Made by a program: the position numbers and the translations under genes | In this document: positions 13,331 to 33,976 of the stretch, one piece after another | Numbering within the stretch: the first letter of the stretch is position 1 | Layout: every line of letters begins with the position of its first letter | Virus record (IMG/VR): IMGVR_UViG_3300034358_000008 | Location: 1-64,000 of that record | Reading direction: 5' to 3' (one strand) | Length of the DNA: 64,000 nt | The notes under the pieces: generated by a model | Told to the model about the DNA's origin: nothing | The model's input: the letters and a program-made list of their open reading frames with translations, nothing else | Database searches by the model: none

Positions 13331-13793
13331 AATGTCTACGGTTATCGGAACCAAAGAAATCTACAGTGGTGAGCAACGACCTACTGACAAACAACGTGTA
13401 CTGTATTACTTCGAACCATTTGAACAATGGTACGTTGGTGTATACCACGCGGAAGATGACGCTATCGTTGGGAAGGCTGGGTTCAGTACATGGCAACCCG
13501 AAGTAACTAAATGGATGGATGGAGAACAGTAAGATGCCTATTTACTTTCAGCTGTGGCCACGGTTTAATACTGTAAATCTGTGGAGATTATACCCGTGGC
13601 TAAATCCCGTCGTACTTGCTATTTCAAGAACCAAAAAGAATTCTTCGATAAAGACCGTCCTTTGAGTTGGGAAAACTCCAATAAAAAGAATAAGGTACTG
13701 TGCCATCGCATCGAAAGAGCGTGGGCTAGTCGTCGTCTGTATCAGGAACTCAATCAGCTTTAAATAAAGTGCCCTCCTTCACCGGAGGGCATT

Positions 13794-14485
13794 ATGAGGA
13801 ATTCAATGCTAACAGTAATATTCTTTGCAATCATGCAACTGAGCCTTATCGGGTTTTGTTTCATGAGCGCCATGCTAATGCTGGGTATTCTAGCATATGC
13901 GTTTGGTGCTGATCTGCCTGACTGGAAGGCTATGGTCAAATACTGGAAGTGGTGTGGTATCACTCTAGCGATATCGTGTATCGGTTTCTTTGTATGTAAG
14001 GGGTTAGTCCTATGAACTGGGGCGTTGTTGCAGGTGTAGCATTAATTCTTTACATCCTTTACGCTATCTTTGTCCCACCTAAGTGGTATCGGGATAAGCT
14101 TTACGAAGACGATGCACTTAAGGCTAAGCGTGAGGCCCGTAAGTACGTCAGGAACGTCGTTAAGGGCATGGTTATACATGCGGTCCAATTCGATCGTGGA
14201 CATACCTCTGGCATCCTTACAAAGCGTACCCCACAAGTATTCATCTTCCATGGAATCATCCGCGGTGACTTTTCAGAGACTCTTTATCTGAGAGTGGATC
14301 AAGACGGTAACGTATTCGAATACGAAACTGACATAGCAGCTAATGCAGCAATCCAACAGACAGACTTCGGTATTGTAGCTGTAACTGCATCCGATGGACA
14401 GATTCGTTTCCGTGACGTAGTTCCTACTGGTTCATCAGATCGGGACCTGTATAAGTTACGATTTAATTTCCTGACGAGTTCCTGA
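13794..14485 (+). other. Two membrane-associated hypothetical CDS (13794-14015, 14012-14485)
   Basis: Hydrophobic N-terminal segments; ATGA overlap. Confidence 0.6.
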
Positions 14486-31004: not shown

Positions 31005-32309
31005 ATGTCCACGCAAATCGTAACCTGTCCTAACATGACTCTCGTAATCAAGCGACTGACTGATTACACTGTCATGCACCTCTCTGGTCTCTCCAACATC
31101 CCACACCTCTGCGTTAAGGTTCGTCACAACAACGGCTTTGTGTGGTTTGGCATCAACGTAATCGGTGTTACCGACACAAGTGCATGGTCGAAGAAGACAG
31201 AAGAAACTGTCTACAGCCAGTTCATGGAAGCAATGCGACAGATCATCGACATCGTTACTCTGGAATCGGATGTACCATTGTTGATGCGTTCTTTGCAGGA
31301 TATCACTACTGGTCGTAAGCGTCCTGTGATGTTCGGTGGTAACACCAACGAGTTCGTTCAGATCTGTTCCACTAACAATGTGCAGATCGAAGTGTATCGT
31401 CATGAAGTTCGTCACGAGGCCACCACTTACGGTGGCTTCTTCGCTACGGCCCGTGCTGGCGGTAAGACATATCCAGTAATGGTCTACCATCGTGGGATCA
31501 TCCTGTACAACTACATCACTAAAGAAGCAGTTTGCGAAATGCTTCGTAATGAACTGACTGCTTTGTTCCCAGATACCTTTGGGACTGATCTCGTTATCAA
31601 GTTCAGTGATATCGAGTCTGTTCCACGCAACCGTAGCAAACGGAGCTAACCATGAACTCTCAGATCCTTATTGTAGATCTTGTCCGTAACTGGCATACGG
31701 TCGGAAACAACTCAAGGTTCGCTAGTAAGGATCTTGAGCATTTCACGTTGTCTTTGGTAAGTCAACCGGTTGAATACGATGGCACAGAAGACTTCTCTGT
31801 TATCGTGTTGTGGGGTGATGTTGAAACGAAGCCTAAAGCCGAAGGTGAGCGGAATCCAGTTCATGACCTAATCCATGAAGTGGTGAAGAAGTTCGCTATC
31901 GGTGTAGGGTGTCGTACCAGTCAAGTCAATCATGATAACCGGACTACCAAGGTCAAGCTTAAAGCTGAAGAAGCAAAGAACGTTGTTGAATTTGAATGGC
32001 TGGAGATCAACCTTGCAGATCACAAAAGACTCGAGTGAATTAAGTAGGACCAAGAAGTTAGCGCGCCGTTACGCAAACATGTTGGTGATCTGGGTAACGC
32101 TCACGTATATGCTCGTGATCGCGGTCGGCGTACCGATTAGCATTATCCCAGACATAAAGACATTACTCATTGTCCCTCGTGTGGAAGATCACACTTTGTT
32201 GAAATGGTTAATGTCGGCTTACCTTGCGACAGCATTCTGTCTGGAATGGTTCCTGTATGGAGTCATTCAACGTGCTCGTGCGCGGATCAAGTTGTACGAA
32301 GTAGATTAA
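31005..32309 (+). other. Hypothetical CDS (31005-31649, 31652-32038, and a 2-TM protein ending at 32309)
   Basis: Coupled ORFs. Confidence 0.65.
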
Positions 32310-32334
32310 AGGAATACTGTTGTGGTAATAATAT

Positions 32335-32795
32335 AGGAGTGAATGCTCCTCCCGTGATCATCATGCCTTTCATTGGCAACACCCCCTGATCGCGGGCTTC
32401 CTATTCAGAACCATTGCTACGGCAGTGGATCTAAAAGTTTAGGAGTTCTCAAGGGTCATCTCCCTATCCATGGTCCCCGTCGCCTTAGCTACAGGATAGG
32501 GCCTTGATCGAACTCCGCCTAAGCATAGCTGAACTTTCGGTATACGCGAAGCATTTCCCTCTCCGGGTTTTGTCTTGTGAAGAACATAGTGGCCATTAAC
32601 CAGTGGTCGAACCGAAGCATTGTCCCTTGACTGGTTCTCATCCTGACAATGAAGTTATCAACAACATAACACTAACTGGTTAGGTTATTAGAAGATAGCG
32701 ACTGACGATTGCGATACCTCTGAATAAGCTGGGGGTTACGCTGGCCAGCACGCAAGAGTTAGATTACAGCCCAAGCCCCCTGCCATCTGGCGGGG
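32335..32795 (+). ncRNA. Candidate large structured ncRNA (about 460 nt) of unknown family
   Basis: About 510-nt gap with no credible ORF; many helices, a pseudoknot and a terminal terminator (see findings). Confidence 0.7.
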
Positions 32796-32821
32796 GCTTT
32801 ATTTCGTCTTAAGGAGATACT

Positions 32822-33265
32822 GTGAAAAAGATCGATAACACAACATTCCTGATTGAAAGACAGGGCGAACTGGAACAGGTCGTCATTGACTATTTCAAGG
32901 GTGAAGCCGACGCCGGACTTATTCGTGGTCACGTCGCCGGAATCCCAAGTTGGTATTCTGTTTATTACTTAGAGGTGCCGACCGAGTATCCATTCGTTGC
33001 ATTACTAAATGATGACGATGAGCGTTGTAACATCGAATTCCAATATGTCAAACCTAGTGACTTCATCTGTATTGATGATGGTTCGCAACGTCTGTTCGAA
33101 TTCCAACTACGTCGGTCAATGACCTCAAGTCCTTATCGCGTGGTCGAGTCAACTTATCAAATACCCGCAAAAGATATCTTCGAGGCTCATCTCAAACTTG
33201 GTCAGACCATGCACCGAAGCGAAGAGTATGAACTGGAGGTCGTTTCCTATCAACAAGTTCGCTAA
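32822..33265 (+). CDS. Hypothetical protein (paralog of 33479-33976)
   Basis: FLIE..GEL...P..YP......D.E.......V..SDF shared between the two. Confidence 0.7.
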   Translation: MKKIDNTTFLIERQGELEQVVIDYFKGEADAGLIRGHVAGIPSWYSVYYLEVPTEYPFVALLNDDDERCNIEFQYVKPSDFICIDDGSQRLFEFQLRRSMTSSPYRVVESTYQIPAKDIFEAHLKLGQTMHRSEEYELEVVSYQQVR

Positions 33266-33478: not shown

Positions 33479-33976
33479 GTGAAAGAATTAGCGCGTAATG
33501 ATGACATAGGTTCATCTGATGCTTATCGCTTTCTTATTGAATCGGAAGGCGAGTTACAAGAAGCGATCGGTAGTGTTATCGTAAAAGATAACCTTAGTCT
33601 TCGGGCAAGTGTCCGGGGCGCAGTAGACGTACCGGGGACGTATCCGTACATTGTTTGCATCTACGGTGATGAAGAATACGATTTCGTTTCACTGGCATTC
33701 GTAACAGTCTCTGATTTCTTTGATGGTCCGAATTACTGCCAACAAATCCGTGATCAGTTGATCAATGCTGAAACCATGAAATGTCAAATGGAACGCATCA
33801 ATGATGCAATCCAAGCCAAAGAGTCTGAAGTTGAGTTCCGTGATCTCGATGATGAGCCTAATCCAGATAATCAGTACTGTCTTAATAACGCACAAGCTGA
33901 ATGGTTTCGTCTGAGTGGCTTTAAAGTTAACTGGGAAAAATATCCACGCACGTGGAAGGTCTCTGGTTGGTTCTAA
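33479..33976 (+). CDS. Hypothetical protein (paralog of 32822-33265)
   Basis: Same motif set. Confidence 0.7.
   Translation: MKELARNDDIGSSDAYRFLIESEGELQEAIGSVIVKDNLSLRASVRGAVDVPGTYPYIVCIYGDEEYDFVSLAFVTVSDFFDGPNYCQQIRDQLINAETMKCQMERINDAIQAKESEVEFRDLDDEPNPDNQYCLNNAQAEWFRLSGFKVNWEKYPRTWKVSGWF

Follow-up and report, generated by a model that had tools for sequence, protein, structure and literature searches.

A predicted structured non-coding RNA gene, of unknown function, built around a core hairpin shared by the phiKZ-like Pseudomonas phages examined

Results and discussion

Gene content and coding potential of the locus

The 64,000-nucleotide stretch of DNA analysed here (hereafter the window; positions 1 to 64,000 of the 324,912-bp IMG/VR contig IMGVR_UViG_3300034358_000008) belongs to a phiKZ-type, nucleus-forming jumbo phage related to Pseudomonas phages 201phi2-1 (Serwervirus) and Viktualia. 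Within a co-directional (+) gene array, an ORF ending at 32309 and an ORF starting at 32822 flank a gap that, at an ORF cut-off of 50-60 aa, is the largest ORF-free gap in the window (32390-32758/32821). At a cut-off of 80 aa or more, the tRNA region and a 681-nt stretch at 13331-14011, which has no ORF of that size on either strand, are larger. Upstream lie a homolog of PHIKZ287 (31005-31649) and two overlapping + strand ORFs (31652-32038 and 31932-32309), of which the first matches phrog_16349, while the second is conserved in the closest relative, contig L006, and looks like a small hydrophobic protein whose real start is probably downstream of 32038. The two downstream ORFs (32822-33265 and 33479-33976) are weak paralogs (29% identity over 77 aa, E = 4e-6) without Pfam or PHROG hits; the first is absent from L006 and thus looks like a recent insertion next to a duplicated TAAGGAG. 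Pfam and PHROGs searches with 20 neighboring proteins indicated no function, apart from a weak match of PHIKZ289 to HslV-family peptidases.

The gap is conserved at 66-71% identity in 201phi2-1 and Viktualia, and is also conserved in three IMG/VR contigs and one metagenome contig (L021), which gives seven distinct long forms of 460-483 nt. L021 was the only true homolog by nhmmer among 22 loci retrieved by a pattern scan of metagenomes. The region does not code for protein: every + frame contains 6-12 stops, no ORF is conserved among 10 homologs, and the longest ORF differs in frame and strand between them. Variable columns are spread evenly over the three codon positions (87/78/84), and only 6% of indels are multiples of three. 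Annotated CDSs, or their starts, nevertheless lie inside the RNA in 201phi2-1 (gp425; L001 3450-3716) and in Viktualia (CDS0139 and CDS0140; L002 3007-3288 and 3368-3457). The gp425 start is probably the ATG after the terminator, which has a strong Shine-Dalgarno (SD) sequence, and the two Viktualia CDSs are probably spurious.

Conserved fold of the + strand

The + strand folds at -158 kcal/mol, better than its shuffles (z = -3.04), while the - strand does not (z = -0.51). RNAalifold on the alignment of the seven long forms predicts 107 pairs, 35 of them with compensatory changes, and the single-sequence minimum free energy (MFE) fold recovers most of the same helices. In a curated set of 16 helices comprising 94 proposed pairs, 93.5% of cells are standard pairs, against 85.7 +/- 0.7% when the 3' letters are shuffled and 35-44% when partners are slid by 1-3 columns. 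Thirty pairs carry compensatory changes, against 14.2 +/- 2.3 in shuffles, and 0 of 500 shuffles reach the observed values. The sample is small, and because all sequences are related, the shuffle controls overstate significance; the slide control and the per-helix pattern are the stronger evidence. In these helices G-U cells outnumber A-C cells by 58 to 4; selection therefore acts on an RNA of the + strand rather than on DNA. Together with the lack of a conserved frame and of a cumulative GC-skew turn at 32.5 kb, this makes it very unlikely that the region is a DNA-level element (origin or packaging site) or a decayed protein gene, although annotators have placed CDSs here.

The 5' domain comprises three hairpins. 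P1 (32335-32350; AGGAGU/GCUCCU) is 90% paired, with compensatory changes at 2 pairs; Viktualia has GGACAC/GUGUUC. P2 (32351-32396), which has a variable loop, was proposed in the initial annotation as CCCGTGATCA/TGATCGCGGG; the stem, CCCGUGAUC/GAUCGCGGG, is 94% paired, with compensatory changes at 3 pairs (G-C to A-U and U-A to C-G). P3 (32411-32428; CCATTGC/GCAGTGG at the DNA level) carries a YNNG tetraloop and is 100% paired over 6 pairs, with a U-A to A-U compensatory change. P2 and P3 are joined by a single strand, J2/3 (32397-32410; CCUAUUCAG), conserved in 5 of 7 sequences. In L006 (about 10220-10209, - strand), the conserved J2/3 strand CCUAUUCAGA is replaced by AACUUUCGGA, a copy of the 5' strand of helix P5 that might allow an alternative pairing with ACCGAAG.

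P4 (32442-32516) is a long compound arm made of stem A (32442-48/32510-16), stem B (32449-54/32502-07), stem C (32463-69/32494-500) and stem D (32472-74/32482-84), with an internal loop containing AUCUC (32458-62) and the apical loop CCCCGUC (32475-81). P1-P3 and all four segments of P4, also recognized in the initial annotation, are 90-100% paired, and all except the short apical stem D, which hardly varies in this clade, show compensatory changes. The arm is followed by J4/5 (32517-32534), where NCCUA occurs in nearly every family member and continues as GCCUAAGCAUA in the 201phi2-1 clade.

The 3' domain begins with P5 (UUUCGGU 32535-41/ACCGAAG 32611-17), which encloses the variable P6 (about 32545-32579) and the hairpin P7 (32590-96/32603-09). 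P5 is nearly invariant in sequence (96% paired, no covariation), and phages PA1C and PhiPA3 keep it with a U-G pair; P7, missed in the initial annotation, is 92% paired, with compensatory changes at 6 of 7 pairs. The P8 arm (32618-32651) has the basal stem CAUUGUC/GACAAUG, 92% paired with compensatory changes at 4 of 7 pairs, and an apical loop at 32631-37. The initial annotation had combined this helix with an AACCAGT/ACTGGTT stem into an H-type pseudoknot. However, AACCAGT/ACTGGTT is real only in its core and is not a hairpin stem: ACCA (32599-32602) lies in the P7 loop and UGGU (32632-35) in the P8 loop. A per-sequence analysis, used because a MAFFT alignment of this segment was out of register for some helices, found the 4-5-bp loop-loop complement in 9 of 9 long forms (now including PA1C and PhiPA3), where it covaries as ACCA/UGGU (six sequences), UCCA/UGGA (L021), GCCAA/UUGGC (PA1C) and GCCA/UGGC (PhiPA3). 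The contact crosses P5 and is thus a pseudoknot-class kissing interaction; the earlier proposal was right in substance and wrong in geometry.

The P9 arm (32654-32699; GUUAUC/GAUAGC) has a variable inner hairpin and is preceded by the conserved GAAGUUA; it is 98% paired, with compensatory changes at 2 pairs, and PA1C and PhiPA3 have GUUAC/GUGGC and GUUAC/GUAGC, respectively. A three-way junction (32702-32762) follows, composed of P10 (CUGAC/GUUAG), P10a, P11 (32716-22/32730-36) and P12 (32740-42/32747-49). P10 is 100% paired, with a double compensatory change in homolog L036. Its sequence is unrelated in the three lineages (5, 12 and 7 bp in the 201phi2-1 clade, PA1C and PhiPA3, respectively), yet it encloses the same two hairpins in each. 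One of these, P12, presents CUGGCCAG, which is invariant in the 9 long forms and contains a palindromic GGCC loop (32743-46) whose flanking pairs covary.

Not every proposed element is conserved. The initial annotation had also suggested a long-range pairing, TATTCAGA/TCTGAATA (32402-09/32719-26), closing about 310 nt. It is a perfect 8-mer in the window, but across homologs it is only 61% paired, has no compensatory change and does no better than slid controls. Its 3' half belongs to the conserved local hairpin P11, with which it competes, and the pairing is probably due to chance. A long-range GCUG/CAGC closure in the MFE fold (32528-31/32767-70) is likewise not conserved, and only two of the three copies of AAGCAT in the window are.

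Promoter and terminator signals

Immediately upstream of the RNA (32310-32336, +) lies a phage middle-type promoter motif consisting of an A-rich stretch, TACT (32315-32318), TGGTAAT and TATAG, with a predicted start at about 32336-32339 that places P1 at the very 5' end. The motif (an A-rich run, (A)ATACT, about 7 nt, TG(T/C)AAT, N2, then TAT(A/G)) is conserved upstream of all 17 family members compared. It fits the phiKZ middle promoter, described as a TACT motif centered 22 nt upstream of the TSS and preceded by an A-rich repeat (PMC8244752). In the window the same motif directly precedes tRNA-Tyr and tRNA-Trp (42900-42880 and 41664-41644, - strand), and the 201phi2-1 transcriptome study reports a tRNA driven by a middle promoter (PMC11512511). 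It also precedes a second small RNA unit (51208-51085, - strand; motif at 51208-51189), whose predicted transcript of about 100 nt (about 51186-51088) ends at a terminator (stem GCTCCTCCC/GGGAGGAC, then TTTATTTT) just before an SD and an ATG at about 51057. This promoter class seems devoted to stable RNAs in this window.

The 3' end is a strong intrinsic terminator (32773-32804), an 8+3 bp G+C-rich hairpin followed by CUUUAUUU; it is 95% paired, with one compensatory pair. The SD AAGGAG and the GTG start of the next gene (32811-32824) follow 7 nt after the U-tract, a spacing conserved even in L006, where the downstream gene differs. Such a layout is also that of a regulatory leader, and it is possible, although less likely than a trans-acting RNA, that the structure controls in cis how much transcription passes its own terminator, by factor-dependent conditional termination or like a put/EAR-type RNA that makes the polymerase termination-resistant. 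In phiKZ, 34 promoter-proximal terminators give either a short RNA or a long read-through mRNA (PMC10914365), the 201phi2-1 study speculates about antitermination (PMC11512511), and in the short forms described below the core arm lies about 10-25 nt from the predicted start. However, inspection of the alignments of 7 long and 9 short forms revealed no conserved antiterminator pairing, and the G-run that could compete with the terminator in the window is absent in L036, 201phi2-1 and L021. Moreover, the downstream gene is not conserved, being a PHIKZ289-family gene in some phages, a gp425-like gene in others and an inserted gene in the window. A leader of 350-480 nt with a kissing-loop domain is also far more than attenuation needs, and the promoter type is the one used for tRNAs. 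The two readings are not exclusive.

A modular family with a shared core

With the PHIKZ287 homolog as a synteny anchor, nhmmer and regular-expression searches found the P4 arm at the same locus in every phiKZ-like Pseudomonas phage examined, among the 60-odd that have been sequenced, with one copy per locus, always 0.5-2.5 kb downstream of the PHIKZ287 homolog. A covariance model built from eight sequences outside the 201phi2-1 clade finds exactly one copy in the window (32438-32525, 20.5 bits, E about 0.01-0.03) and one in each relative. On 19 distinct arms, placed in a model-based alignment because a MAFFT alignment was out of register for some helices, 93.1% of cells are paired, against 69.9% in shuffles and 30-55% in slid controls, and 14 of 17 pairs have compensatory changes. 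Stems A-D vary freely, but AUCUC in the internal loop, CCCGUC in the apical loop and a G opposite the internal loop are invariant. The RNA is not one indivisible unit of 460 nt but a 75-nt core hairpin with lineage-specific 5' and 3' additions.

In phiKZ, Phabio, Psa21 and several uncultivated relatives, the gene comprises only promoter, core arm, NCCUAUU and terminator, giving an RNA of about 125 nt. PA1C-like phages and PhiPA3 add the 3' domain (P5-P12; about 375-385 nt), one contig (L049) has a different extension of about 350 nt, and the 201phi2-1 clade, including the window, also adds P1-P3, for a total of about 470 nt. This size series provides natural deletion variants. BLAST places the short form in 46 phiKZ-like records and the PA1C-type long form in 8 records plus PhiPA3, where it is unannotated or overlapped by 'hypothetical protein' calls. 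The gene that follows the RNA in phiKZ, PA1C, PhiPA3 and Psa21 is PHIKZ289 (L031 5749-6480) or its homolog; it belongs to phrog_25842, with a weak match to HslV-family peptidases (E = 1.3e-5), and in Viktualia only a distant homolog lies about 1 kb downstream. The short forms look like classic sRNAs, with an A/U-rich stretch before a terminator hairpin and a U-tail as in Hfq-type sRNAs, and their invariant single-stranded motifs could be seeds that pair with phage or host mRNAs. This seems unlikely, because the invariant stretches are only 5-7 nt long and sit inside a rigid hairpin, and the 5' leader is not conserved in sequence.

In scans of IMG/VR and JGI metagenomes, the family was found only in Pseudomonas jumbo-phage contigs. 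A scan of viral contigs with a core-arm pattern gave 72 loci, of which only already known Pseudomonas jumbo-phage contigs pass the model. A limited scan of bacterial genomes, in which 100 loci were searched with the model, gave no hit and so no host counterpart, although this is a weak test. The PHIKZ287 and PHIKZ289 proteins, both used as anchors, are confined to Pseudomonas phages, so that other chimallivirus genera could not be reached by synteny.

Relationship to known RNA families

A cmscan of the whole window at the Rfam gathering threshold gave only 3 tRNAs, and at E <= 10 the region gave only terminator-like hits of 12-23 bits, all falling in the terminator; the same was true for PA1C and 201phi2-1. 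ARAGORN finds only three tRNAs, at 41.5-42.8 kb, and no tmRNA, and the RNA ends in a terminator rather than in CCA. There is no RNase P or intron hit. The size, multi-way junctions and tertiary contact are features of ribozymes, but a catalytic or mobile RNA (a group I or II intron, a ribozyme, an RNase P-like or tmRNA-like RNA, or a retron) is very unlikely. The upstream ORF has its own stop and the downstream ORF its own SD and start, the downstream gene differs between relatives, and the family shrinks to a single hairpin in phiKZ, which argues against a catalytic core. No description of this RNA was found in the searched literature, including two recent jumbo-phage reviews and the ChmC eCLIP study.

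These observations suggest, somewhat more probably than not in the absence of expression data for this locus, that positions about 32336-32804 (+) are an independent gene for a stable, highly structured non-coding RNA acting in trans. It is inferred that the phage's non-virion RNA polymerase transcribes it in the middle phase, from the same promoter type that drives the phage tRNA genes, and that hairpins at both ends give a nuclease-protected, probably abundant RNA. In this interpretation the working part is the core hairpin, whose AUCUC and CCCGUC loops, held at fixed positions by freely covarying stems, are the docking site for a still unknown phage or host factor, most likely a protein, and the RNA acts as a scaffold, decoy or regulator. 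The 5' domain and the 3' domain, the latter locked by the P7-P8 kissing loop, would be lineage-specific accessories, and the GGCC loop could join two copies, an idea that rests only on a conserved palindrome. Some read-through of the terminator probably also feeds the downstream genes.

More tentatively, the RNA may represent a new class of housekeeping RNA specific to nucleus-forming (phiKZ-like) phages. Its core hairpin would be the RNA subunit or docking site of a phage ribonucleoprotein, acting for example in nvRNAP control, RNA export from the phage nucleus, or takeover of host translation or RNA decay, and the long forms would be self-associating ornate RNAs that dimerize through GGCC. 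phiKZ, PhiPA3 and 201phi2-1 are the model systems for the phage nucleus, and large structured RNAs are rare in phages; this RNA is a genetically tractable candidate for an RNA-based function in this lifestyle.

The core, a long irregular hairpin in which covarying stems present invariant internal-loop and apical-loop nucleotides, may be compared with protein-docking hairpin RNAs (4.5S/SRP RNA domain IV, 6S RNA, bacterial Y RNA and HK022 put), although none of their signature motifs or Rfam models match. Like the large ornate RNAs ROOL, GOLLD, OLE and raiA (PMC12286853), the long form is multi-domain, rich in covarying helices and tertiary contacts, present in phage genomes and without known function, and its self-complementary GGCC loop could mediate self-association, as the kissing contacts do in those homo-oligomers. 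However, it has no sequence or structure homology to them (no Rfam model hit), is probably smaller, is confined to one phage clade and can be reduced to a 75-nt hairpin in relatives; the resemblance to GOLLD/ROOL noted in the initial annotation is thus an analogy of size and ornateness only. RNAs of the same general layout, with a phage promoter, a structured transcript and an intrinsic terminator just before a gene, are already known in phiKZ and 201phi2-1 as promoter-proximal, 5'UTR-derived ncRNA candidates (PMC10914365, PMC11512511), and the phiKZ short form, between PHIKZ288 and PHIKZ289, may be one of the 17 phiKZ candidates. The family itself, its covariation-supported architecture, its core and the ornate 470-nt form appear to be undescribed. 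The known candidates are under 250 nt, and the 201phi2-1 screen filtered for under 250 bp and would thus have missed this RNA, which at about 470 nt has 14 or more helices and a kissing loop.
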